Positions 1 to 35,433 of a stretch of DNA of 64,000 nt are shown here, piece by piece. This stretch comes from Selaginella moellendorffii (taxonomy: Eukaryota; Plantae; Lycopodiophyta): positions 2,615,266-2,679,265 of the forward strand of contig NW_003314261.1 of the NCBI RefSeq assembly GCF_000143415.4. The letters are read 5' to 3'. Position 1 is the first letter of the stretch. Every line of letters begins with the position of its first letter. Position numbers and translations under genes: made by a program. Under the pieces are notes generated by a model. That model saw only the letters and a list, made by a program, of their open reading frames with translations, made no database searches and was not told the origin of the DNA.

Positions 1-140
1 GGGAGAGTTACCACCATGTAGAAATGATGGCTCATATCCGAGCTAGTGCTTGTTCCGTGCTTCCCAGATCACTTGGACGCCAATGGACCACCAAATCACC
101 CATCGCTCTAACCCAACTCACTATGTTTGCTACTCCTTAA

Positions 141-1064
141 CATGGTTGGTCCCGATCGTTCCGAATGCCAACCGGCCGACTGCCCGACCGTAGTTATCTA
201 TCGACGGGCTGTGAAAATGCCGAACGGCCGAACGGTTCACAAAATTTTTTTGAAAAAAAAAAAAACATTTTTAGTAAAACCACATTAATAAAAGTAGGAA
301 AACCAAAGCATTAAACCAAACCAAACCAAACCAAACCAAAGCATTAGACTAAACTAAACCAACTACTACTCATTTTCTTCAACATCTTCGGCAAGTCCCT
401 CGACATCTCTAGCATCTTCCTCAACAATCACATCTTCATTTGGAAGATCTTCTTTGGCTAAATCTTCTATACTAAGAGATTCAAGCCTAGATTACATCTC
501 TACATTTGAAAGGGCATTTGCTATTTGCTCCACAAACATTCGGTGAGCTTGGTTCTGAACATGAAGAGGAACATTTGAAGCACTACATGCTTAAATATCA
601 TGCCCAAAAACTTTAGCAAGATGCGCCTTGATGCATTTCGGCAGACCGCCATACATTTTACCACAATAATTACATTTCCAATGCTCAGCTCCTTTGCCGG
701 AAGCATAAGGAGTGAGCTTGGTAACATGGGACCATGCCCAATCGGGTGCCATCGCTCAATTGTGCCAGAATCGCTATGAATCTCTACAATCAAATCTCTG
801 GAATCACTGAATTTCCATTTTAGGGCAAAAACTTCAAGTGTTGCGGACTGGGCGATTTGATTTGCGAGGCCTCAGTGCTGCTCCACGCTCAATCGAAAAC
901 AGAGGCAGGTATGCACGCAGCTCCTATGCCCTCCTCGCCGCAGCAGCATCAGAAATCTAGCGCGATCACCATTTTTTTTGCCGAACGGAATCATCGAACG
1001 GACCTGTCCGACCGCGTTCGGCGGCGGTCGGGGTTTCGGCCGAACGCGGTCGGGACCAACCATG
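141..1064. mobile_element. Non-autonomous hAT-family DNA transposon (~924 bp)
   Basis: Perfect 15-bp TIRs CATGGTTGGTCCCGA (141-155) / TCGGGACCAACCATG (1050-1064). 8-bp target-site duplication with one mismatch: CTCCTTAA (133-140) vs CTCCCTAA (1065-1072). Repeated subterminal GCCGAACGG/CCGAC motifs at both ends. An interrupted minus-strand reading (~370-600, ACSAS followed by an acidic tail) may be a transposase C-terminal remnant. Confidence 0.85.
301..362 (+). repeat. (AAACC)n-type short tandem repeat inside the hAT element
   Basis: aaaccaaaccaaaccaaaccaaacc with degenerate flanking units. Confidence 0.8.
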
Positions 1065-1600
1065 CTCCCTAACCCGAGTACCCCAGCCATGCCCTCCCCA
1101 GCACGCGATCCTTTGCCATGCAGCTCCAGTACTCGGGCCTCACACATTCAAACTACTGTAGAGCTCTTGCTTCGAAGTCTTGAGTGACCCCTAGCTCTCT
1201 TGTCGCTCCCAAAATCTGTTTCCATGTTTCTTTGGCCACTTTGCAATCCCACAGGACATGAGTCATGCCGCATTCCTTCCATTTATGGGCATCCTGATTG
1301 TAAAGTGTTGCTTGTAAATCCACGTCCACTTGGATCCCATATCGTTCTCCTGGTTCCAGCCACCAAAATCCAATCGCTTGAGCTGGAGATGGAGTGGGAG
1401 ATTCGCCCAGATGGATGCATTGGAGAGCTGCAATGGAAAGAACATCCCGGAAGAATCTAGGATCGAAATCGACGAATTACCTTTCAGCATTGTCAATGCC
1501 GTCTGCCGCTCGTGCGCTTCATTTCCCGCCACAGCAAACTCTTTATTGAGCCCTAAAGAGAGTTTGAATTTTAGGGTTCTATGCAAGTTTCCCTTGGAGA

Positions 1601-3502
1601 ATGCAGGCTGCCGTGAAGCTCGAGCCATGGGAGAGAGTGCCGTGGTCGACCGTCAAATCCGTGGTGCTGCGCCTCCAATCCATGATCTACCGCGCCGCCG
1701 TGGCCAACGACACCGCCAAGGTACACGCATTCCAGTCGCGGCTGCTGGAAAACGCTCACGCGCGCCTCCTGGCCGTGCGGCGGGTCACCGAGTCGAATCA
1801 GGGCGAGGCGTCGCTGGGCGTGAACGCGCTCATCACCAGCGAGGCCCGAATCGCGCTCGCCAGGACGCTGCGCATCACTGACAAGGGCCTGCCCTTTTGC
1901 GTCACGCGGCGCCGCCGGCTGGGGCGATGCTTGCAGGACGTTGTCCGCGATCGCGCCAAGCAGATGCTCGTCAAGCTCGCGCTGGAGCCGGAGTGGGAGG
2001 CTCGGTTCGAGGATGGATCCTTCGGGTATAGGCCTCACAGGAGCTACAGAGACGCCATGGACGCCATCACTCTCTCGCTCAAAGGCAAGGAGAAGTACGT
2101 TCTCGTCGCTCACTCGTGCTACATTTTTCAGGAGTTTGAGCACCGCGCGGTGATGAGCAAGCTGAGGAACTCGCTGCCGATCATCGCGTCACAGGTGGAG
2201 GCGTGGCTGAATGGAGGGATCATGGCACTCCGGTGGCTGAATCCGGGGTATCCAAGAGCTGGGGACTTTGGAGTGATCACTCCGCTGCTGGCTAACATCG
2301 CCATGCATGGATTGGAGACCGCCTTCTACGAATGGTTCGCGAAGTTCTATCCCGGCCATCCAGCTCCGCTCTTCGTCCGCTACTGCGAGCAGTTCGTCGT
2401 GGTCAATCGCTCTCATGCCTTCATCCTCGATGCTACTGTGTTTGTCCGGGATTGGTTGCGTGGAGTTGGCATCAAGCTCGATACGGATAGATACACGATC
2501 ACGGACTCGAGGTCGGGCTTCGAGTTCCTGGGATTTAAGTTCCAGCACGCCATGAAAAACGAGGAGATGAGGCTCAAGGTGAGGCCTTCCAGGAACTCTT
2601 ACAGGTTGTTTTTGTCCGAGCTCAAGACGGTCATCTCCCAGTCACGGGGAGGGTCGTGCTACAATCTTATAAGTCGGATGGCTCCGAAAGTTGTGAGGTG
2701 GGGGCACTACTTCAAGTACTGCCATGCTCGAGGGGTGTTTCGGAAGCTCGACAGTATGATCTATCAGAAGCTGAGGCCGTGGGTGTTTCGGAGGCGGAGG
2801 AACATGGGACGGGCCAAGGCCAAGCTCAAGTTTTTTCCAGAGAATCAGGTTTATCTCTTTGAAGGGACTGAGCGGCGGAGCTCATGGGTGCTCACGGATG
2901 GAGGGACGGAGAGGAGAAGGCCGGTCTTTTTGCCTCTGCTTCGCTGGTTCTCGGGTCAAGGGAAACTCGCCAAAAGCCGTGATGAAATAATGATCAACCT
3001 CAATCAAGTTGCTCTTCCGGATCCGAGGAGGTACGAACTTGGTTTGTCTTTCCTTGAGTTTCAAATTGGTTTTTCTACGTAGGCGACGTCGGATTGTTCA
3101 GCTGGATACTCTGATAGATCTCTGGTCCACTGAGAATCTTCTTAAGCTGGACGACGAAGAGCTCGAGGATTTTGCACAAGTGATGAAACTGGTAAGATCA
3201 GACGTATCCAGTATTTCTGTTACCGAAAAGTGTGTGCTTGCAGGGAAACAGGGTACTTTGGAAAGCTGTTACTGATCAAGACGACGGACACTACGTTTAT
3301 CTGTACGACAATCCCGTACGCTGTGCTGCTTTTCCATATTGTTTCTTTCACTCATTTGCTAAACTTTCAGGTGTTCGTGAGAATCAAGGAGGACATTTCC
3401 AGAAAACTAGACTTTATGTTCTCCGAAGCTGAGAGCGCTAAGCTGCTGACAACAGAATGCGGTGACACTACTTCGCCGCAGCATGGACACTTCAAATTTT
3501 AG
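1601..3502 (+). CDS. Nuclear group II intron RT/maturase-like protein (catalytically inactive) fused to a C-terminal SDHAF2/Sdh5-like domain; exons 1601-3030, 3083-3191, 3244-3315, 3371-3502; the 5' end may extend upstream
   Basis: RVT_N motif PWSTVKSVVLRLQSMIYRA...LLAVRRVTESNQG; RT2/2a DRAKQMLVKLALEPEWEARFEDGSFGYRPHRS; RT4 GVITPLLANIAMHGLE; RT5 VRYCEQFVV (YADD replaced); RT7 GFEFLGF; X/maturase domain LISRMAPKVVRWGHYF; no HNH. Three GT-AG introns (52, 52, 55 bp) keep the frame into RRRRIVQLDTLIDLWSTENLLKLDDEELEDFAQVMKLGNRVLWKAVTDQ...NPVFVRIKEDI. Confidence 0.8.
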
Positions 3503-3559
3503 CTATAGCAAGTCTCAACTAACACTTGTTGAGTACCCCTTATCATGGCTTGCGAAATA

Positions 3560-6500
3560 AGTTTATTATTGTATGAGAAAAAGACTTTAAGGGTATTCAA
3601 AATATATTGATGCTTAATGCTTTTAGCCAAAAGGCTTTTACTTTTAGGATGGTGTTCGTTGGTTACGAGGTGATTTATAATTCTAAGCCTAAAAAATGCA
3701 TGGACATGTAAAACAGTCTATGTACATAAAGACTAATTTGTTTTTGGAGGCTTTCAAGTGTCTTTCTAGTTTGAAATTATTTATAGACATTGTCTACACG
3801 CAAACTAACAGGTGTTGGAATTTGGTAAACAGTATGTTTAGGAACCAAAGACCAACAACCTATATATGGATAAAATTTTGTCATTGTTGACTTTTAATGT
3901 CTTTCTAGTCCAAAATTGTCTATGGATATTGTTGAGGCCAAATTCTGAACCTAAAAATACTAAAAAATAAAAATCACAAAAGTAATTAATGACTTAGAGA
4001 TGAATATCACCAACTCACTATGACAGCTTTGTGCACCATGGTGCATCTTACTCGTTACTACCTTGTAGAAGGCTATTGCAGTTGGCTATCCTAGATTTGT
4101 TACCCTTTGAGATAATGTCTTCAATTATAGTCCTTCATAAATTTCTTGAGTTAGGGAAGTCATCTATTAAAGCATGAGTTATGTGCAAGAATTTTTTTGG
4201 CTTCTTTAGGGGTGATGAAGTAACATTATTTGCCAATTGATGTTTACATATGGCATTTGGTGATTCATCTTCCCGCTTCTTAGCAGTGAAAAACAAACAT
4301 CAAAATGTTCTTGAATTCTAACTTATGGGTCTTTAGATGCACTAACTACTGTCACCATAGATTTTCTAGTCAAGGGTGGCATTATTGGTGCCAAAGCCAT
4401 TGAAGGTGGAAGGGTGGCCTTCATTTGTACAGGTGGGTTGGGGTGGAAGTCTATGTGGCTATATCATAAATATCCCAAAAAACACACTTGCTTCAAATAC
4501 CTTCCCTAATTTCTTAAATGCATCTTTAACCATTTTCAGGTCCACATGGTGTGAGTCCATCTCAAGCCTCATCATTATAATTGAGAAGTATAGTGGAGGT
4601 TTAGTATTGTAAGCATGCACAAACGACATTTTGTCTTTGTGCTTAGATGTAAAAATTTGTTATACAAGCTTGAGTAGATATTTGTATTAACCATTTTTGC
4701 ATGTTGGTGAAGAGGCTAAAGAAAAAATATGCCTTCAACCCAAATGTATTTTATGTAGTCATGGTGCCAAAATGTTACCAAGAACTTAGAGTTGGAGGGT
4801 GTAGCATGGATTTTGAAATCTACTACTTCCAATATATGCTTGCTAAATCAGTTTAGAACATCTTGTCTTTAAAAGCTAGGATCATTAATTTGCAAAATGA
4901 GGATGATATTTTCATTCTCCTAGGGTTAAAAAAAATTCAAATAAAAAAGACATTTAAAAAAAACCAAAAATGAAGATGCAAGAACAAGTCACAAGCTCTT
5001 TGAATTTGATTGAACTACCACAAAATGCTTTATTTCGTTAAAGTGGGACTTTTCATTATCCCACTTATGGTGTGTGGCCACATGCCATTTTTATAACAAC
5101 AATAAAAAATTGAAGTTTTAACTTTATAATTTATAAATTAAAAACTTTTCATATGATTTTGTGTTATAATATTGTGAAATATAAAAAAATAAATTAAAAA
5201 ACTGATAAAAATATTAATAAATATTAATTAAGTACTAGAAAATGGCATGTGGACACATGCTAATTAATGTCCCACTTTACTGAATAAGTCCCACTTTAAC
5301 GAAATAAAGCATCAAACAAATAGCTTCACTGCTATATGTTCAACATAGCAACCCACAACAACCCAAGTAGGATGTAGCAACATTAATTACTTAATAGAGG
5401 GATTCATTTGCAGTCACAATCATCTCCATCTTAAAACTTTCAAGACCATGTAAACAAAATATGAATGAATTTCTTATATTCCATTATAAACTTACAGATT
5501 GCAATTATGATAATACCATGATATGTTTATTAATCTAGCAATTAATTACTAATTCATTACCAAAGTAATATTTGACAAATTCTAATATCTTACCTTATTT
5601 AAAAAGTGTGATTTTTAATTTAAACATATAGCACTTAATCTAGCAAAGTTTAGCATTACTATAAAAAACCATGAATATACCAATACAATCATAGCCATTG
5701 ATTCATTTGAGCCATCCAATAGCTCAAGCCCTAACCTAAGTTTATTTAAATATTGATATAAAGTTTGAGCAAATCACTCCATTGCAGCAAAAGATGATAG
5801 ATATCTTATAAAATCTTCTTGATGAAGAAATTTTTTTTATCTATGGTTGACAACAATTTAGAAATAATACAACAAAAGGTTGCAACCTTTAAAGTTAGGT
5901 TAGATAATTTTATTCTTATGGTACATCTTTGAAATGAGTAAAACTTTTAGTGGAAAGAATTACACTAAAGAGACGATAAATAACCATTTAATGCGAATTC
6001 TAAAAGTTCACATACTTCATGATTATTCTTTTGAAAGTCCAAACGAGCCATTCTACTAAACCATTTGTTTGTGAATGATAAACACTTGTGAAAGTGTGGT
6101 ATATCCCCAGCCAAGATGTTAAAACATGAAATGCCTCAACCATAAATATAAAATTATTATTTGAAAGAATCCATTATAGACATAAATGTTAGAACACTAT
6201 TGTGAATATGATTTTAAAAGTTACTTATCGACTAATTCTTTTGGATATTCTTTCCTTATTATTACAACAGTAGAAAATTGGTATTGCTGGACCCTTTATT
6301 AATCTCTCTTGTGCTAGTGGAGTTAACTAGGCATTTTGAGTGTACTTAAACCAAACGAGCATAAGGATAGAATTTTTATGTACTATTAACTAAGTATACT
6401 TAGTTCGGTAAGGAGTTTAAGCCATATTGTGTTCCAATTTTTTATTACATATATACATTAGAATGTTAACTATATTAAAAAATAGACTATATTCTAGTTC

Positions 6501-9500
6501 TATAATAGTGCTGGAGAGAATCATATGATATCTGCATTAAAAATCATATTGTGTTCTAGAAAATACTTTGATAACAATGCTCAATTGACATTTTTTCAAA
6601 TAATTATCAATGAATAATAAGATCAATGGCCATTGTGAAAGATGTTGGATTTGAGTGAAAAAGTATAAGATTATTAATATTATCATGAAGGCCAAGATGG
6701 AAATGTTTCTTGAGAGATATATTCCATAAAATATTAGTGACAACTATTTGGAACTCAAATGTGTAGACAAATACAAACTTAAAGCTTTCACAGCGTGCTT
6801 GTTAAAATGGTTTTATTTCCATAGCTCTCACAAAAACCATATGGTTTTAACAAAATGAAACTTAAGTACATATTTTTTCAACCATGTATATGGTTTATAT
6901 ATGCATGTTCTTTCTAAAGCAATAGTTATCAATATATATAATATATTGCTCTATGAAACCTATTATGCATCTAGAATTCAACCTAGTTTCTATTATAGGT
7001 AACATATGATTGAGAAAGTATAAATTGATATGGTTTTAATTTAGTTATCTCAAGTATTATTATAATAGCAGAATATACTATAGTTTTCAATATAGATAAA
7101 GTTATGGTGTATTATATGTAAAATAAAACTCCTTATCCAACGGCCCCAATCTTAGAACAATTAACATATGAGAAAAACACAATTCTAATGAAAATTAGTC
7201 AATTCTCAATAGTGTCTTTTCAACGTGAAATGACAATGGATTAAAAACCACCTTTATATGTATTGTGGAGGTGCAAATCAACTTCAGAAATAGTATTCTT
7301 ATTTGTCCTCATACTTGTACAATAGATGTTGCAGATGTACTTCCAATAAATATGAACATCCAGTCCAATTAAGGGTTGTTGGTTCCATTCCTTCTTCTTA
7401 AATTTCTAAACCTTTCTATATCATTATTCATCTTCAGTCTTCTAGTTTAAATGTTTCTTTTTAAATTTTAGACAATAGTGATATCAATGTAAACTTCATC
7501 AATTGGAAATTTGCAATTTCTCATGGCATTTTTTTTTCAACTAGAACAACATCCAAGTTATGCTGAAATGATAGATGGTCGATAAATCTCTTTTAAGCTC
7601 ACCAAATATTAGATTAAGCTAGTAGAAGTGAAAGTATTTAGAATTTGTTATAGTATCACTTTCAATATTGTCTCTATACAAAAATACCTTCATCAATTTT
7701 AATCTTTCCTTGGTTTGAGCTAGTGAATTTGACAATGGATTAGAAATGGTGTGATGTTAATTAAACTATTTTCCTCTCTTCCAAGTCCTTTTCCTCTTCA
7801 ATTTAAATCTATCACAATACTTTGGTTGAGTTTCGGAATGTTGGTTGTTGTGATCATGTGTTATGAGTAATATGAGTAATTTCAATATGTTATAGAAGAG
7901 ATGATATAGGCAAAAACATATAAAAGTAAGATAAATTGTTCATTTAAGTTTTCCTCTTTTCTTTCTCATTTTCTTCTTTCCTTGCATTATATCTTTCTTT
8001 CTCTAAGTAAATTCTACAAGATGATCAAAGTCTTAATAGTGGTATTGAAGTGTTGATCCTTTATATGTAGCTTCATTGGAGGGGTTGGGAGAGATAAAAA
8101 AATGTGTTACAAGTGTTTATGAAGTAGTATATGAAAGATCAAATGTATGGAAATGAATAGTATTTGGCTGCAGGAATTTTTTGCTAACACTTGATTAGTG
8201 TCTCCATGGCAATTGATAACTTCTCAGCAGACTGCACTATAGTTAGATTGCCAAAATCAATTAAAAAGAATTAATTATAAAAATAAAGAACCAAAAGATT
8301 AGACTTTAAGTTTAGAGTAGCAAAATCAACTCCAAAAAGGGAGGATCACAGAGTGGTACTAAAATTTAATAGACCAAATGTTTGGAATTTAATTTGACAA
8401 GCAAGGGAAAGGGAGAACCTAGGAGGGTAACATGACCTAGCCCAAAAGGTGGTTGACTTGATATTATTTGTTTAATTAGTAACAAAGAAGCCTTTTGTTG
8501 ACCATTAGAGTTAACTAAATTGATTAGTGGTTTTGGCAAAAAGGATCTTAATGTTAATGATAGCATCAATGCTGCTAGAAAATCCTTCTTAACATTCTAT
8601 TGCACATCCACTTAGCTTAAAATTTTAACACCATAACTTATTATAGATGCATGTGAGACTTAAAAGCAAAAATCATAAAACTTGTAAATATATGCATCTA
8701 AAGGCAAAGTCCTTTATCTGATCTTTAGGAAATAGTTCATGAGATCAACATTTTAAAACTTCTTGATAAACAGAGCATGGAATCTTTTATCAAATCACTC
8801 TAAGAAGTCAATTTTGGATTAACTTTGAACTATGAAGAAAGATAGCCCATAAGCTTCATCATAAAAAAAATCAATTTTCATCTTGTCATTAGAAGGGTTC
8901 TGAAACTAACAACATTCTCAGAACTATAATTAATAATAAAACTTTTTGTTATTGCAAACATATAGTGATAACTTCCATTCTATAGCATGTTTGATGTACC
9001 TATGGTAATCACAGATAATGGATTGATTCAAACTTTAAACGTCCATTTGAAGTAGAAAATCCTTAATGAAATTAACAGAATCCTTCACATTCTTGATGTC
9101 ACTTTAAACCTCAATAATATAACATCCTTGCCTCAAGATGATATTATCAAAAAGTCTCCTCCTTGTCATGACCATTATCACTGATGCCACACTTTTCATC
9201 AATATTAATATTCTGCTCCTCCACCATTCCCAAAAGAACATTCTTAAAAGAACATGTTGTTCTGATATCAATGGAATGAATAAGGAGTGGATTTTAAGCT
9301 AACTTCCCAACCATAAATCATCTAAGTTATAGAATATTTTAAAAATATTTTTGTGGTTCATGTCATTTTCCCCTCATTCATAAACCAGCCCTAGACAACA
9401 GCCTTGGGAGCTTCACATAAAGGGAGTCCAAGACATATGGTCATGGAGAAAAAATGTGTAAATGATAATATTAATAATATAATAAGTAACCATAAAAGAA

Positions 9501-10060
9501 AGAAAACAATACAACTTTCTCATATGACAATACAGTCATGGAACAACAGAATGTGAATAAAGCAATGGCTCAAATTATATAGTAATACAACTACAATTCT
9601 CCTCTTCCTTGGGATTGTTATCTAAGTTATAATGAACTTTAGAAACACTTTTTTCATGTCATTTTCAATTTTCCACATAGCCTTATCTATAGAATAGCTA
9701 TTCCACTAAATTAACAACTCCTAAGTTGTTTTATAACATGTTTTCACCAACATTTGAGCAAGAATGTTAGCTAAATTAACTTTCTTAACATCAATCTCTA
9801 GGAGCTACTTTGACATCACCAAAGTGTAAACATACTTTACTTCTTCACTTCAAAGGAATAATGTCATGATTTAGTCTAGATTGTTAAGAACTTGCTATAG
9901 CTCCAAAGGGAAGAATGATATGAAGTAACCTAAAGGGCCCTTATTGCCGGTTAACTTAGAATGTGTTTAAAGTATATACTTAACTGATAATATATTTAGA
10001 TTATAAATAATTACTAATTTTCAAAACCTTTATAGCACTAATTACTAAGTAAAAAAAACT
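3560..10060. mobile_element. AT-rich, CpG-depleted, ORF-poor block, probably decayed transposon sequence (family not assignable)
   Basis: Sharp drop in GC, very few CpG, no long ORFs, contains an inserted MITE. Only weak LINE-like peptide fragments can be seen. Confidence 0.4.
5025..5312. mobile_element. MITE / small inverted-repeat element (288 bp)
   Basis: Perfect 27-bp TIR ATGCTTTATTTCGTTAAAGTGGGACTT (5025-5051) / 5286-5312. Inner 18/19 inverted repeat 5073-5091 / 5239-5257. Very AT-rich core. CAAA flanks both ends (5021-5024, 5313-5316). Confidence 0.8.
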
Positions 10061-11708: not shown

Positions 11709-13649
11709 ATGGAGGATATGGATATGCTCGAGGCGGTCTACGAAAGGAAGAGCCGGATGATCCCGGTAGGACCGCAGCCCAGCGTCGGTGGCGGCGATTT
11801 CCAGCAGCCGATGATGCAGTGGAAGGAGGAGGAGGAATCGGCGATGGGAATGGACGAGCTGCTCGCGCACGCCGGCTATAATGTGCGGGCCAGCGATCTG
11901 ACCCACGTCGCGCAGCGGATCGAGGAGCTCGACAGCCTGCTAGGGGCGGCGGCGCCCGCGGATATCCTGGCACAAGACACCGTCCACTACAACCCGTCGG
12001 ATCTGGTCAGCTGGATCGAGGGCATGCTGGACGAGCTCGTTCCGCAGCAGCCCACCGCTACCTCGTCCTCCGATATGGAATCGGTGGTCACCACGATCAC
12101 TCATCAGCAACAGCAGCACCTGGATTTCGGCGGTATACCGCCGCCGCCGCCGCACCAGCAGCAAGGCTACGGCGCCGCCTTCAATCCAAACGTGCTCTAC
12201 GCCGACCAGATGGATCTCAGCAAGAACGAGGTAGGAGTAGTAGCATCTCACTCGCAAATTGCTGCTTCCACCACACCGAGGCCGGCATCAGGTTCGTCCT
12301 CGTCGACGTCACCCCACGGCATACCGCCACATGCCGCCGGCGGTATGACGTCAGCCGCCGCCATGCCCACCATCCAGGAGAGCGACGAATTGAGCGGTGT
12401 CCGCCTCGTCCACCTCCTGCTCGCCTGCGCAAACGCCGTCCAGCGCGGGGACCTCGCCGCCGCCGGCGACATGGTGGCGCAGCTCCGGATACTCGTCGCG
12501 CACCCCAGCAGCAGCAGCAGCGCCATGGCTCGCGTCGCCACCCAGTTCGTGGAGGCCCTCTCGAGGAGGATCCAAAACAGCTGCTACAATGGTGGCGGAG
12601 ATCGCCAGTATCATCACCACCAGTCTCAGCAGCAGCAGCAGCGCCAGCAGCAATTCAAAGAAGAGAGCAGCGATCCTGGAAACACCAACAACGGCGCCAT
12701 GGATGAGATCCTACATTTCCACTTCTACGAGACGTGTCCGTACCTCAAGTTCGCGCACTTCACCGCCAACCAGGCCATCCTGGAAGCGCTCGAGGGCCAC
12801 AAGAGCGTCCACGTCGTGGACTTGGACCTCCAGTATGGCCTCCAGTGGCCGGCTCTCATCCAGGCGCTGGCCCTCCGCCCCGGCGGTCCGCCAACGCTCC
12901 GCCTCACCGGCATCGGCCCGCCGCAGCCCCACCGCCACGACCTCCTCCATGAGATCGGTCTCAAGCTCGCGCAGCTCGCCGACTCTGTCAACGTCGACTT
13001 TGCGTTCCACGGCGTGGTTGCCGCGCGGCTCAACGACGTCCAGCCCTGGATGCTTACCGTGCGTCGCGGCGAGGCTGTGGCCGTCAACTCGGTGTTCCAG
13101 ATGCACAAAGCGCTCGTCGAGGAGCCGTCGGATGGGGGGAATCCGGCGGCTGGCGGCAATGGTGGCGGAGGCCGTCGGTCCAGTCCTATCGACGAGGTTC
13201 TCCGGCTGGTACGTAACTTGAAGCCGAAGATCGTGACGCTGGTGGAGCAGGACGCCGATCACAACAGTCCGGTGTTCATGGAGCGCTTCATGGCGGCACT
13301 CCACTACTACTCCACCATGTTCGACTCGCTCGAGGCCTGCAACTTAGCTCCCGGGAGTGTGGAACAGATGGTAGCCGAGACGTACCTGGGACAGGAGATT
13401 GGTAACATCGTTGCCTGCGAGGGTGCCGCGCGGACCGAGCGGCATGAGACGCTGACGCAGTGGCGGATCCGGATGGCGAGGTCGGGCTTCCAGCCGCTGT
13501 ATCTCGGCTCCAACGCGTTCAAGCAGGCCAACATGCTACTCACGCTCTTCTCGGGTGACGGATACCGGGTGGAGGAGAAAGATGGCTGCCTCACGCTTGG
13601 GTGGCACAGTCGGCCCCTGGTCGCTGCGTCGGCCTGGGAGTGCTGCTAA
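11709..13649 (+). CDS. DELLA: DELLA protein (GRAS family gibberellin-signalling repressor), intronless
   Basis: MDELLAHAGYNV (DELLA), RIEELD (LExLE variant), TVHYNPSDL, VHVVD (VHIID), PYLKFAHFTANQAI, ERHETLTQW, terminal SAW. Confidence 0.97.
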   Translation: MEDMDMLEAVYERKSRMIPVGPQPSVGGGDFQQPMMQWKEEEESAMGMDELLAHAGYNVRASDLTHVAQRIEELDSLLGAAAPADILAQDTVHYNPSDLVSWIEGMLDELVPQQPTATSSSDMESVVTTITHQQQQHLDFGGIPPPPPHQQQGYGAAFNPNVLYADQMDLSKNEVGVVASHSQIAASTTPRPASGSSSSTSPHGIPPHAAGGMTSAAAMPTIQESDELSGVRLVHLLLACANAVQRGDLAAAGDMVAQLRILVAHPSSSSSAMARVATQFVEALSRRIQNSCYNGGGDRQYHHHQSQQQQQRQQQFKEESSDPGNTNNGAMDEILHFHFYETCPYLKFAHFTANQAILEALEGHKSVHVVDLDLQYGLQWPALIQALALRPGGPPTLRLTGIGPPQPHRHDLLHEIGLKLAQLADSVNVDFAFHGVVAARLNDVQPWMLTVRRGEAVAVNSVFQMHKALVEEPSDGGNPAAGGNGGGGRRSSPIDEVLRLVRNLKPKIVTLVEQDADHNSPVFMERFMAALHYYSTMFDSLEACNLAPGSVEQMVAETYLGQEIGNIVACEGAARTERHETLTQWRIRMARSGFQPLYLGSNAFKQANMLLTLFSGDGYRVEEKDGCLTLGWHSRPLVAASAWECC

Positions 13650-14373: not shown

Positions 14374-16528
14374 TCACATGGCTCCTTGCTGCTTACAATC
14401 CCTGGTGTTGCTCTCGGGCGACTTGGACTTTTTCAAAAATTCTGCGAACCTCTCCTCGAAAACCAAGTCACTACAGCTATACACGCTACTCAGACCCTGT
14501 TCGTGAAAGTGTTTCCCCAGACGCTCGAACCGGCGTATGAGCCTCTTGTTGAGGCTGTAGCTGAAGAACTGAGGGAAATGAACGAGCTCGCGCTGAGGCC
14601 GATGCATGGCTTTCATGAAAAACTCGTACTTGGGAACCAGAAGCGTCGCGATGCTGAAGCCCAGGAGCGATGGCAATCTTTTCACCATGTCGGCAATTTC
14701 CTTTCTGCATGCAGGACCACACAAATAAAGAACGAAGAGATTTTGTTGTAACACTTGCCTTTGAAATCCAAGTTCGAGGAAGAAGCACACAGTTGGCTGT
14801 AGTTTCTTGTTGATGCTCAAAGTCAGCAAATGAGGACATCGGCTGAGCACCCTTGTCATCACGAGAGGAAAGTTATTCAGAAGTCAAGCAAGGGCCCGGC
14901 AAAGTGCTGCTTACTTGCCGATGCTTTCCGAGTCAATGCCTAGATTTTGTATGAACTTGAGGTTCGGACGGATCTTGGTTTCCACGTTCAAGCCCAGAAC
15001 CATTGGCTTGGACCGCATAACCTTGAGAATGTTGAAAATCCGTTAGGTAGATGGAAACGTGAACGAATGACTGCACAAACCCTGACGACATCAACACCGA
15101 GACTCGCAAGGAAGCGCACGGTCGGTATCATGTTGTCCTTGATGTGAAGAGTCATCAGCTGCGGAGCTTTAAACAAAACCTGCAATACTTTCGACAGCAC
15201 AGATACTTTAAAGAAACTATACTCACTTTGCCAAGGTCCTTGCGCACTAGGCCCAAGCTGAAGAGAAACTCAACTCTCTCCTGCATGTCATGCTTGATCG
15301 TCAGCAGTCGGGGGTGTCTTCTAAGCAGTTTTCCCATCAACAATGGTGGCACGCCCAGATTCTCGAGAGAAGACACTACTCGGCAAAGGGCCTGCGAATC
15401 AAGCTCAGGGTGATTACTAGAGAAAATGGCAGAGCTTCTCACCTCATGACTGTATCCCAGAAGTCCTGGATACAAATAGAGAATCTTATTGATGTCGTCG
15501 GCGGTGGCGTTGGTGCTCTTTAGAAAATCGACCAGGGGAGCCAGACCCTGAGCGTCCGTCTCGAGAAGAGAAAGCTTTCTGGAGATGATCCGTCCGATGC
15601 TGGTTTGCCGAACTCCAATGCTTTCCAGATAAGTTACCAGGCTTTTCAGCTTTTCCCCATCCATGAGAACCGATGGATACCGGTTGACAAGCCTTTCCGT
15701 GTCTCTGCGAGACAAGCCAATGCTTGCCATGTACGTGACACACTGAGTGAGATCATCCGCGCTTCTCGAGAGCAGCTGTGGAGCTCTCGCCACCAAACTC
15801 GAGAGGCTCATGGACGTGAAACCGAGCCGGTTGAGTACCACGACAGCGGGAGCTAGATCGTTGGGGTGATGGTGGAAAATCTTGGGCCACGCCGCGATCA
15901 CTCTAGCCAAGGAGTTGTACTTGACACCAACGCCTTGGAGAAACTCCACCATTGTGTCCACTGGCTCTACGCCCGACTCTAGAACGAACGGCATCACCTT
16001 TGACACGTCCGAGGCTTTGATCCCGAGCTTGTGGAAGTAGGAAACCAGCTTGGAGAAATTCTTCTCTTCGGCACGGGCCAGCACTGTAGAGACGCCGCTC
16101 TCGGCAGCTCTCGGTGCCTGGGAAGAAAGATTGCTGCGCGGATCGTGCGTATCGGACAATGTAGCATCTTCTTGCTCCTCTTGCAAGCCGCTGATAATCT
16201 TGTCGGCGTGCCTGAGAACTTCGAAAGCGTACCGTGAAGGAATCCCATGGCGCTCCAGCAGCGCAAGCAGCGCATTCACGACCTGGCCCCTCTCCAGCCG
16301 CGGCGATTGCGATTCCTCCACCGCCAGCGCCTCGATCTCCAGAAGCGTCGGGACATTGCGCTCCTTCTTGGATTTCGGCGCCGCGGCAGCAGCAGCAGCA
16401 GCTGCCAAGGAATACCTGGATCGAAACGAACAAGCCGCTATCCCTCTCGATCGACGGAAGAACGAGCGCTGGAAGACGCCATTGGCTAGGGCCGCGCAAG
16501 AAGAGTCGAGGAGGCGAGGGACCGCCAT
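14374..16528 (-). CDS. mTERF-family organellar protein, multi-exon
   Basis: Transit-peptide-like N-terminus. mTERF repeats (RAPQLL, RYPSVL, RRHPRLLT, RCPHLLTLSINKKLQPTVCFF, FPQFFSYSLNKRLIRR) spread over ORFs 15155-16528, 14988-15200 and 14374-14862. Confidence 0.9.
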
Positions 16529-16645: not shown

Positions 16646-17917
16646 TCAGTGGCGCCGCCTCTTGCTATACTCGTCGCTATAATCCTCTCCTTTCTCTCTC
16701 GATTTGTAGCTATGGCTGCTGGGCTTGTTAGCGTTGTGATCCCGATCTCTACTGTCCCTGTGTTGCTGCCTCTCTTTCTCGCGATCCAAATCCTTTCCAT
16801 CCTTGTGATCCCGCGAAGCTTTGCCGGTTTCTTTGCCGCTACCTCGGCCATCCTCGTCCTCGAAACCATACCCGCCACCGCCGCCCCGCTCGCTCTCCTC
16901 CCATCCGCCGCTACTCCACCCTCCAGCATTCGCGATCGCGTGCCCGTTTGCTCCGCCCCGTCCGAAGAACGCTGGATTTACGTGAGGCGGCGGCACGCCC
17001 GGGTAGTGCATCGGATACGCAGGACCCCGCGGCATGAATCCCATCCCGAAAATGCCCGGTCTCATCGGAGGAACAAAGCCCGGATCGCCAAACAGCCCCA
17101 TTCCTCCTAGCGGAAGTTGTCCATTGTTACCACCACCACCACGGCCGCGTCCTCGTCCTCTACCACCGCCGCCACCACCCCCGCCACCGCCGCTATTTTT
17201 CTTCCCGGCCTGGCCTTGCTGTGGAGCTTGCGCTGCTTGCGATGGCTGGCTCTGGCTCTGGCTCTTCGCGTTTACTTGCTTGAGGACTTGGGGCGTGGCG
17301 TACTGGACGACGCAAGGGCGCCCATTGAAAATCCTGCCATTGAGCTGCTCCTTGCATTGCTGGGCCGCGAGTGGATCGTAGAACTCAACCTGGCAGTAGC
17401 CCTTGGATTTGCCACTGGCTCTCTCCTCGGAGAATTTCAGCCCCTTGTGCCGCCCGAAATCCGCCAGCGCGGCCTCCAGATCGGCGTCTGTCGTCCACCA
17501 GTGAAGCTCCGAGATGAAAATCCCCGCCTTCGCATTCGCATCCACGAACTGCTGCTGCTGCGGTGGCGGCCGAGCGAGAATCCCTGGCGAAGAATCGATA
17601 GGAGCTGCTGGAGCAGCGCTCTCGCCAGTGGCAATGGGAGGATCTTCATCCTTGCTGAAACTCTCTGGCGCCGCATTAACCCTAGCCGGCGCTGTCGTCC
17701 TGTCCTGCTCGTCCCTGGGGTAGAGCTCACCAGATCCCTTCCCTGGCGCTGCCGCTACTGGCGATGGCGCTGGACGAGCTGGAGGAGCAGCCGCTTCCTG
17801 GGGAAAGAACCCTACATTTACATCGTCGTAGAGATCCTCGTACTCCTCATCGAAATCCTCGTCGCCGCCAATGCCCGCGCTGCCGATCTCCACATCGAAA
17901 TCGAGCTCCTCCACCAT
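16646..17917 (-). CDS. CFIm68/CPSF6-like RRM protein (cleavage factor Im large subunit), intronless copy
   Basis: YEDLYDDVNVG N-terminal motif; RRM IFISELHWWTTDADLE...ERASGKSKGYCQVEF; Pro/Gly-rich PPHVNPAFFGRG; R/D/E-rich tail ending KRRRH. Confidence 0.85.
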   Translation of the reverse strand: MVEELDFDVEIGSAGIGGDEDFDEEYEDLYDDVNVGFFPQEAAAPPARPAPSPVAAAPGKGSGELYPRDEQDRTTAPARVNAAPESFSKDEDPPIATGESAAPAAPIDSSPGILARPPPQQQQFVDANAKAGIFISELHWWTTDADLEAALADFGRHKGLKFSEERASGKSKGYCQVEFYDPLAAQQCKEQLNGRIFNGRPCVVQYATPQVLKQVNAKSQSQSQPSQAAQAPQQGQAGKKNSGGGGGGGGGGRGRGRGRGGGGNNGQLPLGGMGLFGDPGFVPPMRPGIFGMGFMPRGPAYPMHYPGVPPPHVNPAFFGRGGANGHAIANAGGWSSGGWEESERGGGGGYGFEDEDGRGSGKETGKASRDHKDGKDLDREKERQQHRDSRDRDHNANKPSSHSYKSREKGEDYSDEYSKRRRH

Positions 17918-23661: not shown

Positions 23662-23978
23662 GAACTGGTACGCGAAGATACGAGAAATAGTTTTGTTGTT
23701 GTTGTTGTACAGGCTTCTCACCGAATCGTGAGAACGAAAAGACAAAGGCTGGTTCTATATTGGACACGTAAGTTATTTACTGTTATCACAGCGATGCCTT
23801 GAAATTTAATAACGGGAAATTTTTTGTCGACTGATGAGTTGTGTTTGTTTCTTCCTTGAGAATTTACATAGCTCCTCGCAAATGGCTGCTGGCCGGTGGC
23901 TAAAAATTTCCAGCACTGGACGACAAAGCGATGATCAAGGTACTTACTTGGTTCTTCCTTGAAGCTGCTAAAATTCTT

Positions 23979-25124
23979 TTATACTTGTGCTGTAGCTCCA
24001 GCAACGATCTCGAGGATCTCTCCAGTGATCTTGGCTTGTCGCTGCCGGTTGTAAGTGATGGACAGGCTCTTCTTGAGATCCGAGGCATTCTCACTGGCGT
24101 TGTTCATGGCGTTCATCCTCGAGGCGAGCTCGCTGGCCACGGACTCTTGCAGCGCTCGCAGGAGCTGGCTGTTGAGGTAGAGTGGCAGCAGCGCGTCGAG
24201 GATCTGGACGGGCTCCTGCTCGAAGATCATGACTCCGCTAAACGGAGTCACCTCCGTCTTGAACGTATCACGCTCGACCGTGAGCTTGCCGTCCTTGGTG
24301 GTAAGCCGGAACATCTCATCCTCGTCCGCGTCTACACAGTTTCCATTGATGTCGCAGACCTGTCCCTGTGGAGAGAGCGGCAGCAGCGTGTGGATCACTG
24401 GCTCCGACTTGATGAGCGACACGAACTTGGTGTAGAGGAGCTCCACCTTGTCCACCTCCTCGCTCACGAACAGCGCGAAGAGCTCGTCGGCGATGGCCTG
24501 GGCCTCCGAGGTTGTGGGAGCCGAGCCGGTCTGGTACGTCTTGTCCAGTGGGATGTATGGCCGCCTCGTGAAGTAAGCATTGCCTTTCTTTCCAATGCTG
24601 ATCACCGTGAGCTCCACAGTGTCCTTGAGCTGCCGCATCCTCTCCTCGGCCTTCTTGAGCACTGTGTTGTTGAATCCTCCGCAGAGGCCTCGATCGCCAG
24701 TGACGACGACGAGCGCGACCTTCTTCACGGGCCTCACTTTGGTGAGAGGAGTGTCCACGTCCTCGAGCTGCAATCTCTCGTTGACGTTGTAGAGCACCTG
24801 GACGAGCGCCTCGGAAAAGGGGCGGCCGTTCACCACGGCCTCCTGGGCTCTACGCACCTTGGCCGCCGCCACCAGCTTCATGGCGTCGGTGATCTTCTGC
24901 GTGTTCTTCACCGTGTCGATGCGATCGCGGAGATCCTTGAGGCTGCACACCGCCACGGAGCGTCCCCGGCTGGCCCTGCTCTCGAGCTCGCCGCACAGCT
25001 CGCCGCCGCCGACGAAATCCGAGCGGCGCAGCTTGGAAAATTCGCAGCTGCCGCTCGGGCTGGCGACGCACCTTCTGGATCGGGAAGCTCCGGCCATCGT
25101 CATCGATGGGATCGCGCACGCCAT
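23979..25124 (-). CDS. ATPC: Chloroplast ATP synthase gamma subunit, intronless
   Basis: Transit peptide; LRDRIDTVKNTQKITDAMKLVAAAK; GDRGLCGGFN; redox insert VCDINGNCVD; YNRQRQAKITGEILEI. Confidence 0.97.
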   Translation of the reverse strand: MACAIPSMTMAGASRSRRCVASPSGSCEFSKLRRSDFVGGGELCGELESRASRGRSVAVCSLKDLRDRIDTVKNTQKITDAMKLVAAAKVRRAQEAVVNGRPFSEALVQVLYNVNERLQLEDVDTPLTKVRPVKKVALVVVTGDRGLCGGFNNTVLKKAEERMRQLKDTVELTVISIGKKGNAYFTRRPYIPLDKTYQTGSAPTTSEAQAIADELFALFVSEEVDKVELLYTKFVSLIKSEPVIHTLLPLSPQGQVCDINGNCVDADEDEMFRLTTKDGKLTVERDTFKTEVTPFSGVMIFEQEPVQILDALLPLYLNSQLLRALQESVASELASRMNAMNNASENASDLKKSLSITYNRQRQAKITGEILEIVAGATAQV

Positions 25125-25379
25125 TGCCTCTACCCCTCTCGCTAGAGAGCCCTAAATTTCAAAGTTGTGTGGTGCTCGCTCGCCTCATCCGCCATCGGAC
25201 GACTGGCGTTGCTTCGATTTGCATCCGACGGCTCGACGCCACAGCCTCATCCACAAAAAAATCTTTTTGGCGCGCAAAAGTATATCCTATTTAGTTTAGG
25301 GTTATGGAAACAGCGTGAGGGCTGGCAGCCGGCGAGGACGCCGGCTGCGAATGCCTCGCGTGAAATGTATCCTGCGTGA

Positions 25380-29855: not shown

Positions 29856-32800
29856 GACAGAAATCTTGGATGCTGCTCGACAGCGCTGCGACGGCTGTAT
29901 ACTCGAATTTCAAAGTCGCGGTCAAGCCCGAGACAACGTTTTTCTCAATCACGAAAGTGAAACGTTTGAATTTTCAAAAGTTAGGGCATATTATATTACT
30001 ACTTTTTACCACTTTTTGAGCCTTTAAATTTGTACTATGGAGTTTCTCTTGCTTCTGAATGGTTTAGTGACTTTTTATGAGTTTTTTTTTTCTAATATAA
30101 AGTTATTCTCAAATCTTATTTTGCTTATGACTGTAGCATTTTCTCTAAAATTTGTCAGGGCTTTTAAATTATAATGTTTAGTTATTTTAAGCTCTCTTTT
30201 TTTTTGAGAAAATTGAGCTTACACAATAATTTAGTATTTAGATCTTAACAGTCAAGTATAAAATATAAATAAAGAACTTAAATCTAATGGGTTTGATATT
30301 GCAAAAACTATAAGTAATTATTTTTATCCTTAATAAATCTATTCCATTAAGTTATCATTCCTTTAGTTGAGTGCTACACTTATAAAATATGAAAGTAAGG
30401 ATTTTAATTAAAACTAAAATTTAATATGGGTAATGAATAAGGATGAATATCTCCCTTTAATATTGTAATAAATTTTCTTTATTCCAGATGATATTTTGCC
30501 TTCTAATTCTTAAATTTTCTTGATGATCCCACTACTATAAATATTTTTGTAATTTATAAAACTTCATTAAAAAAAATATTTTAGTTTTTATCTAAACTAA
30601 TTTTATTTTTACTGGATTAATATATTATTATTTAACAATAAAAATCTCACAACTAGTTATGATTTTAGAAGGCTAATTTATATAGTAATGGTATATTTTG
30701 CAACTATTAAAAAATTTATAATTTTTCATAAGTGAGAAGAGTTGTTTGATTTTTATAATTAGAGGTGAGTCATGTAAAACAAATCTTTCATAAAACAACT
30801 CTATCTTCTTGTTTGTTTAAGCAAACCTGTAAGGGATGGTAATGAATATACCTAGAATATGCTTGAATATTTTAGGATATTCTATCATCCAATGGTGGTT
30901 ATTCATTTAAATTAATTTCATATTTATAATTTATAAACATGTTTATAATTTATAAACTTTTCTAACCACTTTGTATCATCATGAGCATGTGTGGTTTTTG
31001 GAGCATGAGCCAAAAAAACCATGTAATGTATAGTGCATTGGTTGGGTTCTATGTCCAGAATGGCAATTGCAAGGGAGCTCTCAAAGTTCCATTGCCAAGG
31101 CCCTCAATGCAGCCACCACCATGAAGCAGAGAATCTGGAGCTCCAGGGCTGGATGGATGAGGCAGCCAGTGATCCATGTGAAGGGAAGAATGAAAACGAG
31201 GAGGAGTGCTCATAGGGGGCTCCCAGCCTCAATTGCAACAAGCATGAAGTATTGAAACCAGCTCGGAGATTTGAGCAAGGCCCCCTCGAGATCAATCATG
31301 ATGCTATCGTTGTTCCTGGCCACTGTATTCTCCACTAGCTCCAATGGATTGCTCTTGTCCCTGGGAAGCATCAAGAAAATCATATTTGAACTAGTGAATT
31401 GATTGAGAATTGCCTCTCCCTGAAGGTTTGAGTTGAGAGCCATGATCCAGGATCAGAAACCCACCAAGGCAGTACTGATCCAGAATCAATCAATCAACCT
31501 GGAACACATCCATGGATGGAGCTTAGATCTTCCTCCATATGGCTGCTAGAAAACAAAGATCAGTGGAAGAAAGAGAGTCTTTTCAAAGAGGAGTCATTGG
31601 GAAGAGCAAATTGAGGCTCAATTTATGGATAGTGACCAAACCTTGAGTTTTGGAGGAAACCATGACATAAACATTGGGCTTTGACTTGGATGCATGAGTC
31701 CACACAAATGACAATCTTTCTATTCCTATTCCTTCCTCTTTTTTAAAGCAACAGATGGAAGGAGATTGTAGCAGCTGAGGAGTGGAGTCAAGTTGCTTCT
31801 AGCTTTAGCTTGGATGATGATGAGAAGTATCTAGCAAGGATGTTTACAACAAGGAGAGTTGAAAAGGTTTGTCACATGTGGAATTGGTATATTATCTACC
31901 CTAACCCTAATTGATGGATTTTAATTTTTAGCTCAAAGTTTTTTTTTGTTTAAGTGAAGGCTAGTTTATTTTTGGCTCTTTTTACTAATAAAATTAACTA
32001 AAGATAATTCTGTTTAATCAATCATATAGATATGTCAAATTTTGATTGTGCTATGGATGTTGTTCAGTTGTCACCCCCTGAGGATATGTCAACAGAAACA
32101 AATTATTATGAAGGTTTGGTTTTTCTCTTTATTCTTTAGTATTTCTTGATTTATTTCTTTTTGGTTTTGTAGTTTCACAAGCAAAGAGGACAAAGCTGAC
32201 CATCCTAAAAGCCACTATTGCATCACTTAACTTTGAAAAAGTAAATTCAACCAAGATTCTTGAGTTGAAGATTTTATCTATGTATGGTTTTGAAATCCTT
32301 TTTTTTCTGTAGTTTTGATTTACTTTTTGCCTAGGTATGGAACTTATATAGTTCATCTTGCACAGAACACTCTATGAAGTGCAAAATACTTAATTTATAT
32401 AATGGATTGTATAGATATGCATGGCTTGCAAACTTTAACTATATATAGTGATTCATCTATGTGTGTGTGATTATATAATAAATTTATGGTTGGCAAATGT
32501 TTCTCACTTACAAGATTTGTAATTTAAAAAAAAAATTAACAAGATTGTAATTATCTCACTTCAAATGGATTGAATGATAGAAAAACCTAATTTACCACCA
32601 TGGAAGTTCAGAAAAGTTCTTTATATTACAGATTCTTCTATCATTCAAATTATAAATGATTTTGATGTTAAACTAAGATTACAGCCAACTAAAGCCAACT
32701 TCATCTTTAATGGCTACTAGAGTTTATCCACAAGCTATACATGCTGTTATAATCAACATTGGTGTTTTTCCTAAAATAAAGATTGTTTTTTCTTATAAGG

Positions 32801-33059
32801 ACATAACTATGGTAATGTTTTTTCCTATTTAATTTTCTATTTCTAAGATATTTTTCACAGCCCTTTATGCATCTAGAGTGTGAAGAGCAGTATCATCATA
32901 TTGTACCAGATTTATATGCTGGATACATGCCAAAGTTTTTATTTTTTAATATTATGAAAAGCATGAGTGTGTCAGGTGATTTAGCAACACTTGGAAGTAC
33001 TTTATTTTTGCTACTAGTTGATTCAAACAAAATTCAGAGGCTCAATGAAGTTTATAGAA

Positions 33060-34620: not shown

Positions 34621-34706
34621 TTTTATTCTTTCATTATTTTAAAATAAATAATAGAGGTTCTTTTATTCTTGTTCTTCTTCTTATTTAGAAATGAATACTT
34701 GGCCTA

Positions 34707-34716
34707 GTATATAAAA
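34707..34716 (+). promoter_or_regulatory. TATA box of the CVNH gene
   Basis: GTATATAAAA ~70 bp upstream of the ATG at 34782. Confidence 0.45.
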
Positions 34717-34781
34717 TTCCAAATTTCCACATGAATTTCTTAAAGCTGTTAAAATGTGTCAGACACATTTAATTTAGTAGA

Positions 34782-35267
34782 ATGGACTTTCATCTTTCTC
34801 TCATTGTTATGCTTTTGATTGCTTTGGTGAAAGCACAGGTCTTTTTGAATGAGTTTAATTTTTTTTCTATAACAAAACTATTCCCAAAATCTTATTTGGC
34901 TCAGGATTGTGGCTTCTTCTCCAGGACGTGTGGGAGCTATCAAATTACAAGGCTTGGTTACTTTTGGGCTACTTGCTTCAGAGAAAATCGAGCCTACTCA
35001 GTGAATTGGTATATCATTCTCAACTATTACGTAGAAAATGTGAATGGAGAGCTCAAACCCGGTGGCTCAGGCTTTGCACAAACATGTGATGGCCTACAAA
35101 TCGTAAAATTTGACACTGAATCTTCAGATCCCAACCACAGAAGGACAGGAATTGGAGGCTATTGCAAAGATTTCAATGGAACCCAAAACTGGTCACAATT
35201 TGATGTGGATTCCCATGTAATGAATAAGGATGGGTATCTTAAATGGTGTGGTCCTTGGACATGGTAA
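34782..35267 (+). CDS. Secreted cyanovirin-N homolog (CVNH lectin); probable 66-bp in-frame intron at 34839-34904
   Basis: Signal peptide MDFHLSLIVMLLIALVKAQ. Two CVN repeats: FSRTC...ATC...LNYYVENVNGELK / FAQTC...GYC...VDSHVMNKDGYLKW, matching cyanovirin-N FSQTC..LNSVIENVDGSLK / FIETC..LDDHIANIDGTLKY. Confidence 0.85.
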   Translation: MDFHLSLIVMLLIALVKAQVFLNEFNFFSITKLFPKSYLAQDCGFFSRTCGSYQITRLGYFWATCFRENRAYSVNWYIILNYYVENVNGELKPGGSGFAQTCDGLQIVKFDTESSDPNHRRTGIGGYCKDFNGTQNWSQFDVDSHVMNKDGYLKWCGPWTW

Positions 35268-35433
35268 TAGAAAGCCTTTTTTTTTAAGCTTCGCGCTACG
35301 TGCATATATTAGGGCTTGCCACTTAATTCTTGGTATTGCAGATGGGCGGAATGCACGACGCCTTTGTGCTTGTCTGCTCCTCCGGGCAAGTAATCAAACA
35401 ATATTTCGTGTAGATTTGAGCTAGACCGCTGAA

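Follow-up and report, generated by a model that had tools for sequence, protein, structure and literature searches.

At positions 1601-3502 of a 64,000-nucleotide stretch of contig NW_003314261.1 (hereafter the window), the spikemoss Selaginella moellendorffii carries a homologue of the reverse transcriptase (RT)/maturase proteins encoded by group II introns. The open reading frame (ORF) at 1601-3082 on the forward strand is intact (493 aa), and an in-frame TGA at 1565-1567 closes the frame 5' of its ATG at 1601. It belongs to a transcribed, spliced nuclear gene whose product joins a maturase part that has lost the catalytic aspartates of the polymerase to a short C-terminal tail.

Gene structure and transcripts

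Transcript contigs from four runs (four studies) were aligned to window positions 1-6000. In each run the contigs start at 1595 and end between 3505 and 3593, forming a single contig of 1757-1843 nt or, in run X3, a chain of shorter contigs. Contig assemblies give no measure of transcript level, and the 5' end at 1595 is inexact. The contigs of all four runs have the same three GT..AG joints and the reading frame is continuous across each of them, giving a coding sequence (CDS) of 1743 nt (1601-3030, 3083-3191, 3244-3315 and 3371-3502) for 580 aa plus stop. Of 24 public runs listed, 20 contain the stretch in whole or in part; they come from nine named studies.

All features lie on the forward strand. 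The 5' untranslated region (UTR) comprises at least 6 nt (1595-1600). Exon 1 (coding 1601-3030; 476 codons plus 2 nt) encodes RT0 (RVT_N), a degenerate RT1-RT7, domain X (GIIM) and a remnant of the D domain, and contains no internal spliceosomal intron in the contigs of the four runs. It is followed by spliceosomal intron 1 (3031-3082, 52 nt) and exon 2 (3083-3191), whose 36 full codons, RRRIVQLDTLIDLW..., are weakly SDHAF2/Sdh5-like by Pfam and Protein Data Bank (PDB) matches. Intron 2 (3192-3243, 52 nt) and intron 3 (3316-3370, 55 nt), both spliceosomal, flank exon 3 (3244-3315; 24 codons, GNRVLWKAVTDQDD...); exon 4 (coding 3371-3502) adds 43 codons and the stop TAG at 3500-3502, and the 3' UTR extends to the contig end (3503-3593). 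A preliminary description of the locus, made from the letters of the DNA, had given the interval 1601-2960 and reported an intact frame of more than 470 codons. The frame is indeed intact, but it ends neither at 2960 nor at the stop at 3082: splicing at 3030 carries it on to 3502. The three additional exons, with their SDHAF2-like piece, and the lack of an N-terminal targeting extension are new relative to that description.

No contig of the four runs aligned at 3600-6000 and very few did so immediately upstream of the gene. Thirteen unmatched letters before 1595, found in one low-depth contig, were considered as a possible upstream exon and not taken as one because there is no AG acceptor.

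The contigs differ from the window by T>C, A>G, A>C, G>C, C>T and G>A changes that are common to several runs, of which four in the CDS are synonymous and two non-synonymous; they look allelic, unlike organellar C-to-U editing. The frame stays open over the 476 codons of exon 1, where four of the five other frames hold 10-28 stops. The GC content at third codon positions (GC3) is 0.756 in the maturase exon and 0.46-0.56 in exons 2-4; eight neighbouring genes range from 0.54 to 0.81, in agreement with the nuclear-like, GC-rich codon usage described earlier. Since the gene is expressed and spliced, with contigs from four studies, it is not an unexpressed recent nuclear copy of mitochondrial or plastid DNA (NUMT/NUPT), the possibility that the preliminary description had itself set against its reading.

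Neither tRNAs nor other organelle hallmarks were found in the whole 64-kb window, in which the neighbours encode DELLA/GRAS, mTERF, two RNA recognition motif (RRM) proteins, a kinase, a leucine-rich repeat (LRR) protein and a P4-ATPase, all ordinary plant nuclear genes. This setting bears on whether algal or cyanobacterial DNA contaminates the assembly, or arrived in it very recently by horizontal transfer, as might be suspected from the algal plastid and cyanobacterial nearest relatives described below and from the lack of a plant orthologue in our search. Such an explanation is scarcely credible. Three spliceosomal GT-AG introns of typical spikemoss size link the ORF to the downstream exons in single transcripts, the ORF lies on one contig amid plant nuclear genes whose GC3 it resembles, and near-identical sequence occurs in runs of nine studies; the spliced transcripts and the plant neighbours together rule contamination out. 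Identity to any known sequence does not exceed 38-40%, so the arrival, too, was not recent.

Maturase domains and decay of the polymerase site

The protein matches the Pfam family RVT_N, the RT0 extension, over aa 10-89 (E 3.8e-18; 66 bits, cut-off 28.1) and GIIM over aa 337-410 (E 6.4e-13), which places domain X, the thumb, at 2609-2830 (+). RVT_1, at 28.7 bits, stays just below its own cut-off of 29.6, and TIGR04416, the NCBIfam equivalog for group II intron RT/maturases, scores 160.9 bits against a cut-off of 300. Because both scores fall below their cut-offs, the protein is, by these profiles, a homologue of the family and not a standard group II intron RT/maturase member. Intron_maturas2 (PF01348) and MatK_N gave no match at E <= 0.1 in the ORF, and Pfam detected no HNH domain in 1601-3082, as the preliminary description had stated. 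Among solved structures the best relative is 6me0_C (T.el4h-type), matched over nearly the full length at E 1.8e-35; proteins of class IIC give 6e-14 and 1.7e-8, and LtrA, a mitochondrial-class protein, gives 1.4e-7 over one-third of the length.

Motifs were called from a residue alignment to 6me0_C and from a 23-row alignment of the protein and 22 homologues, supplemented by column counts for RT3 and RT4. RT3 (2099-2131, +) reads VLVAHSCYIFQ for xLDADIxKCFD, with its conserved aspartates gone; the 'PQG' site of RT4 (2255-2269, +) reads RAGDF for GTPQG, in a segment of low model confidence; and RT5 (2381-2392, +) has YCEQ for YADD. In their wider contexts, RYADDFV has become RYCEQFV, LDADIxKCFD has become LVAHSCYIFQ and GTPQGG has become RAGDFG, PQG itself being replaced by DFG. 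All three catalytic aspartates are thus lost in these alignments, which upholds the central observation of the preliminary description. In addition, RT1 has a deletion of ten residues that removes part of the motif (IPKPGK), and the alignment to the homologues stops in the D region, the HNH-associated Cys/His columns being absent.

The losses are not spread evenly. Of 117 columns that are conserved in ≥90% of 64 chloroplast-like (CL) proteins, the spikemoss protein retains 72. In the polymerase motifs (RT1, RT3, PQG and RT5) 8 columns are kept and 20 lost; elsewhere, with the deleted endonuclease columns excluded, 63 are kept and 16 lost (Fisher p = 2.9e-6). RT0 keeps 14 columns and loses 4, and RT2/2a keeps 22 and loses 3, so that the good conservation previously ascribed to these two regions holds. 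It does not extend to domain X, for which the same had been claimed: with 6 columns kept and 3 lost, X is only moderately conserved, as is the D remnant. This pattern of kept and lost motifs fits the earlier proposal that RNA binding would be retained without polymerase activity.

AlphaFold modelled the exon-1 product with a predicted local distance difference test score (pLDDT) of 78.6 and a predicted template modelling score (pTM) of 0.75, confidence being low at RT1 (residues 99-109), the PQG loop (209-222) and the tail. The best fold matches of the model are 8fli_B and 6me0_C, with template modelling (TM) scores of ~0.6, and the maturase fold is retained in this prediction.

No group II intron RNA (Intron_gpII, D1-D4) was detected by Rfam at the gathering score in the whole window, nor in positions 1-6000 even at E <= 10. 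As a positive control, the same search found domain V/VI 20-200 nt 3' of the ORFs of relatives in two loci, L087 and L089, and also behind the mitochondrial-type control ORF introduced below. Because the control detects these domains in relatives, the absence of intron RNA at the spikemoss locus, likewise noted before, is meaningful.

Relatives and class

A word search of the protein database with the spikemoss protein returned 710 relatives, the best 120 of which were inspected. These are RT/GIIM proteins with 30-38% identity, and most also carry HNH; the four among the best 120 that are named by organism are chlorophyte chloroplast proteins from Gormaniella, Bracteacoccus and Jenufa. The closest relatives are algal plastid intron proteins (35-38% identity over ~90% of the length), with cyanobacterial proteins next, and five traced relatives lie in plastid genomes, within petB, atpB and psbB/psbC. 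No relative in this search exceeded 38% identity. Since it returned no identical or near-identical protein, the gene appears to be missing from the public annotation.

Two of the algal plastid loci deserve mention in their own right. In one (L088:4880-13752), three successive CL intron proteins (583, 628 and 580 aa) interrupt atpB, which is an unusually heavy intron load for a single gene. In the other (L089:500-2350 and 6001-7809), one plastid genome holds two maturases, one of mitochondrial type in the cytochrome b6 gene (Intron_maturas2) and one of CL type in psbB, each followed by a domain V match.

With the patterns LALEPEWE and FExNSxGFR, 584 relatives were recovered from bacterial genomes, and among the best 79 of them cyanobacterial loci predominate strongly, with 30-36% identity. 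The three best 'bacterial' matches (L001, L002 and L003) come from metagenome-assembled genomes labelled Labilibaculum, Spirochaetota and Aquaticitalea, stand on contigs of 3-10 kb and fall inside the plastid clade described below; they are probably mis-binned algal organelle fragments.

The relatives, the RVT_N/GIIM content and the T.el4h-type best structure agree with the cyanobacterial/chloroplast-like class given in the preliminary description. The likeness to CL group II intron proteins, which occur in algal plastids and cyanobacteria and have been solved for the T.el4h-type (PDB 6me0, 8fli), extends to the domain order RT0-RT1..7-X-D, the Pfam families RVT_N, RVT_1 and GIIM, the LALEPEWEAxFE/GFRPGRS signature and the predicted fold. 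Unlike them, the spikemoss gene is nuclear, lies outside any intron with no domain V/VI nearby, lacks the catalytic aspartates, PQG and part of RT1, has spliced exons in place of HNH and sits on a very long branch. The D domain and HNH endonuclease are present in most CL members and missing from some.

Phylogenetic position

Trees were built with FastTree (205 rows) and with IQ-TREE under a site-mixture model (71 rows). Both split into a cyanobacteria-dominated clade and a plastid clade, with the spikemoss protein in the latter; in the IQ-TREE tree its membership of the 35-row plastid clade has an ultrafast bootstrap of 100 and a Shimodaira-Hasegawa-like approximate likelihood ratio test (SH-aLRT) value of 99. 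Its nearest rows are P0001, a petB-intron protein, and P0003; the position within the plastid clade is not fixed.

Several results weigh against taking this placement at face value. The spikemoss branch is very long, at 2.1 changes per site where the median is 0.49, and the amino-acid make-up is deviant. In approximately unbiased (AU) tests, placement with the cyanobacterial clade (p 0.38), placement outside all 64 CL rows (p 0.36) and pairing with the single mitochondrial-type control (p 0.21, delta log-likelihood 27.6) were not rejected. The AU tests reject nothing because the branch is very long and the composition deviant, and topology-free profile and pairwise scores were therefore added.

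Against a hidden Markov model (HMM) of the plastid clade the spikemoss protein scores 418.6 bits, and against one of the cyanobacterial clade 329.2 bits (89 bits apart). All six outgroups score about equally well or better on the cyanobacterial HMM than on the plastid one, and clade members left out one at a time favour the HMM of their own clade by 229-312 bits. Pairwise phmmer scores of the spikemoss protein are 239-317 bits with plastid proteins, 207-247 with cyanobacterial ones, 50-164 with other bacterial classes and 19 with the mitochondrial-type control. This control (L089:500-2347, from a plastid cytochrome b6 intron) matches RVT_1, Intron_maturas2, an AI2M-like HNH and, weakly, MatK_N, and matches neither RVT_N nor GIIM; its Pfam profile is the opposite of that of the spikemoss protein (RVT_N plus GIIM).

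These scores also speak to the idea that the protein is a mitochondrial-lineage maturase of the nMAT1-4, matR or matK kind to which divergence has lent a chloroplast-like look. All nuclear maturases reported so far from S. moellendorffii have been traced to mitochondrial paralogues (PMC3927076, PMC10012718), and the AU test leaves pairing with the single control unrejected. On the other side stand the 19 bits to that control against 239-317 bits to plastid CL proteins, the partial LtrA match (E 1.4e-7, one-third of the length) against the full-length match to a CL-type structure (1.8e-35), the RVT_N/GIIM content against Intron_maturas2/MatK_N in the control, the LALEPEWE/FExxSxGxRP signature shared with the 584 CL relatives, and a best tree that places the protein in the CL plastid clade at 100/99. 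A mitochondrial-lineage origin is accordingly very improbable. The chloroplast-like assignment of the sequence is well supported, and affinity to the plastid clade is the best reading of these comparisons.

C-terminal tail

The tail of the spliced product was searched exon by exon. Exon 2 alone matches the Pfam family Sdh5/SDHAF2 at E 0.0074 (16.6 bits, cut-off 27; profile positions 10-43 of 76), and its single PDB match at E <= 10 is yeast Sdh5, 2lm4 (E 0.085, residues 33-64). The RGxxE motif is absent from this exon, RRIVQ being aligned to R-G-I-L-E of yeast Sdh5. Exons 3 and 4, each searched alone, gave no family match. The ~104 residues joined through three short spliceosomal introns stand in place of the lost endonuclease end, their first part being a putative degenerate SDHAF2/Sdh5-like module. 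As a lead, we regard the tail as the probable captured 3' exons of a decaying SDHAF2 paralogue. Compared with SDHAF2/Sdh5, the succinate dehydrogenase flavinylation factor, exon 2 aligns to both the Sdh5 profile and yeast Sdh5, whereas the spikemoss module scores below the cut-off, has RRIVQ for RGxxE, lacks a presequence and stands C-terminal to a maturase.

Such a chimera might be transcribed without having a function: a plastid-type intron ORF could have landed in or beside the decaying SDHAF2 paralogue and be spliced to no purpose. The loss of the catalytic residues, the RVT_1 and TIGR04416 scores below cut-off, the broken RGxxE of the SDHAF2-like exon, the want of an orthologue from other plants in the word search and the apparent absence of the gene from public annotation would all suit this explanation. 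We nevertheless judge it improbable. A transcribed relic is made less likely by the 580 codons that stay open on a branch of ~2 changes per site, with 10-28 stops in other frames, and by losses that are focused in the polymerase motifs and leave RT0 and RT2a nearly intact (p = 2.9e-6). Moreover, codon usage is now nuclear-style, the allelic differences are four synonymous to two non-synonymous, the predicted fold is confident and the gene is expressed in runs from at least four studies.

Proposed origin and function

Taken together, the evidence leads us to favour, as probable although well short of certain, the reading of the locus as an expressed nuclear gene for a 580-residue chimera of a CL-type, RT-dead maturase and an SDHAF2-like tail, acting as an organellar splicing cofactor. 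The first 476 residues would descend from a CL group II intron-encoded protein and now stand free of any intron. This descendant would be without the polymerase active site (RT1, the RT3 aspartates, PQG and YADD), the HNH endonuclease and its own intron RNA, and would still have RT0, RT2/2a, the RT4 helix, RT6-7, the thumb (domain X) and part of the D domain. In the solved ribonucleoproteins of group II introns, it is RT0 and the thumb that hold the intron RNA. The kept parts would thus hold intron RNA, and the lost parts would have served only DNA synthesis and target cleavage. Because of this division between RNA-gripping parts kept and DNA-synthesis and cleavage parts lost, the protein, judged from its sequence, would most likely act in trans on organellar group II introns, as an RNA-binding cofactor of their splicing and a maturase devoid of reverse transcription.

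Among known proteins, angiosperm nMAT1-4 and the nuclear maturases of S. moellendorffii and Physcomitrium offer the nearest parallel, being nuclear, derived from group II intron proteins, degenerate in the RT and presumed to act as splicing factors in trans. Type I nMATs also lack the endonuclease (En) domain. nMATs have an Intron_maturas2-type domain X and N-terminal targeting extensions, and PF01348 is carried by nMATs, matR and matK alike. The spikemoss protein differs from the nMATs, which are traced to mitochondrial intron paralogues, in its CL-type RVT_N plus GIIM content, its SDHAF2-like tail and its lack of an N-terminal extension. From proxies (LtrA and the mitochondrial-type control) and from the literature, we infer that its source was a plastid-type intron and that its recruitment was independent of that of the mitochondrial-type nMATs. 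MatK (plastid trnK intron) and MatR (mitochondrial nad1 intron 4) are degenerate-RT maturases that serve several introns in trans (PMC8393795). They are organelle-encoded, still intron-borne and of mitochondrial lineage, unlike the spikemoss protein, and MatK_N and Intron_maturas2 match the mitochondrial-type control and not the spikemoss protein.

The mitochondria of S. moellendorffii contain 37 introns, 35 of group II according to the text of the source and two of group I; matR is absent according to its tables, and nad4L lies inside nad1i728g2 (PMC5654404). Selaginella plastomes have only 7-11 introns, and two species lack matK (PMC6590440). According to reviews, Guo and Mower 2013 found that S. 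moellendorffii has seven nuclear loci for maturases, four of them in the nMAT1/2 clade and one (nMat6) in the nMAT3/4 clade, with mitochondrial paralogues as the source throughout (PMC3927076); a maturase phylogeny of 2023 again groups the spikemoss nuclear paralogues with nMAT1/2 (PMC10012718).

The reading as an organellar splicing cofactor has several observations against it. The function is a prediction. The N-terminus is level with that of organelle-encoded homologues, W10 aligning to their conserved W, and without a targeting extension; because of this alignment, and because the contigs begin 6 nt 5' of the ATG, a classical transit peptide or presequence cannot be accommodated. Since there is no such extension, organelle import, if any, would be non-classical. 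The SDHAF2 likeness hangs on one 36-residue exon (E 0.0074 and 0.085). The word search found no orthologue in another plant. The locus may, finally, be one of the two remaining loci of Guo and Mower 2013.

The N-terminus in particular leaves room for a different job. An RT-dead protein of maturase fold could have acquired a new task away from the organelles, whether cytosolic or nuclear, in which it would bind RNA generally, serve as a chaperone or fulfil a function linked to the SDHAF2-like tail. Besides the missing extension and the contig start, this would accord with two acidic residues within the first 11, a C-terminal third swapped for unrelated exons and the accelerated evolution implied by the very long branch. 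It remains unlikely in our estimation, although it is the alternative that we take most seriously: RT0, RT2a, the thumb and the D remnant, which are kept, are the parts that contact intron RNA, in plants this fold is known to act on organellar introns only, and some organellar proteins enter without a cleavable presequence.

A more specific version of the organellar reading can be put forward tentatively, and we hold it to be more doubtful than the general one. In it, the gene would be the first land-plant nuclear maturase derived from a plastid-type and not a mitochondrial intron protein, would have arisen in the spikemoss lineage, captured the 3' exons of an SDHAF2 paralogue and become a trans factor for IIB-type organellar introns that enters the organelle by a non-classical route, in a plant with hardly any organelle-encoded maturases left.

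Other features of the window

Upstream of the maturase gene, no ORF gave a Pfam match. At 352-870, contigs of all four runs align at only ~90-95% identity with both ends loose, and this segment looks like a member of an expressed repeat or paralogue family and not like the exact locus; the nearby ORFs at 521-793 (-) and 872-1147 (-) are without a Pfam match. An AAACC-type microsatellite or short tandem repeat (277-362) lies 3' of a poly-A/T tract (241-262).

AT-rich blocks at 4000-10000 and 30000-36000 (GC 0.28-0.35) stand amid GC-rich gene islands (GC 0.5-0.62). A perfect 27-nt inverted repeat at 5025-5051 and 5286-5312, with arms 234 nt apart, resembles a miniature inverted-repeat transposable element (MITE). 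Further downstream, an intronless DELLA/GRAS gene of 646 aa occupies 11709-13646 (+; DELLA E 5e-29, GRAS E 3e-130). A gene of the mTERF family, a family of organellar gene-expression factors, lies ~12 kb from the maturase gene (15155-16525, -; 456 aa) and is adjoined by an RRM protein gene (16646-17914, -). Two ORFs overlap on opposite strands at 23931-25142 (+, 404 aa) and 23979-25124 (-, 381 aa), that on the forward strand having no Pfam match.

Implications

The domestication of a mobile-element protein as a host splicing factor has its textbook example in the nuclear maturases, which are also a model for the origin of Prp8 and the spliceosome. The literature consulted here traces all plant nuclear maturases to mitochondrial introns (PMC3927076, PMC10012718). 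If the reading proposed here is true, a polymerase-dead maturase of CL lineage would represent the same domestication repeated from a different source. Selaginella would be an informative host for it: no other land plant has as many mitochondrial introns, matR is absent, and the plastomes are losing introns and, in some species, matK as well. The gene would also be a natural experiment on what such a protein still requires without reverse transcription and mobility, since it has kept RT0, RT2a and the thumb and has lost RT1, RT3, PQG, YADD and HNH. Where the protein resides can be tested directly, given its chimeric tail and the lack of a presequence.

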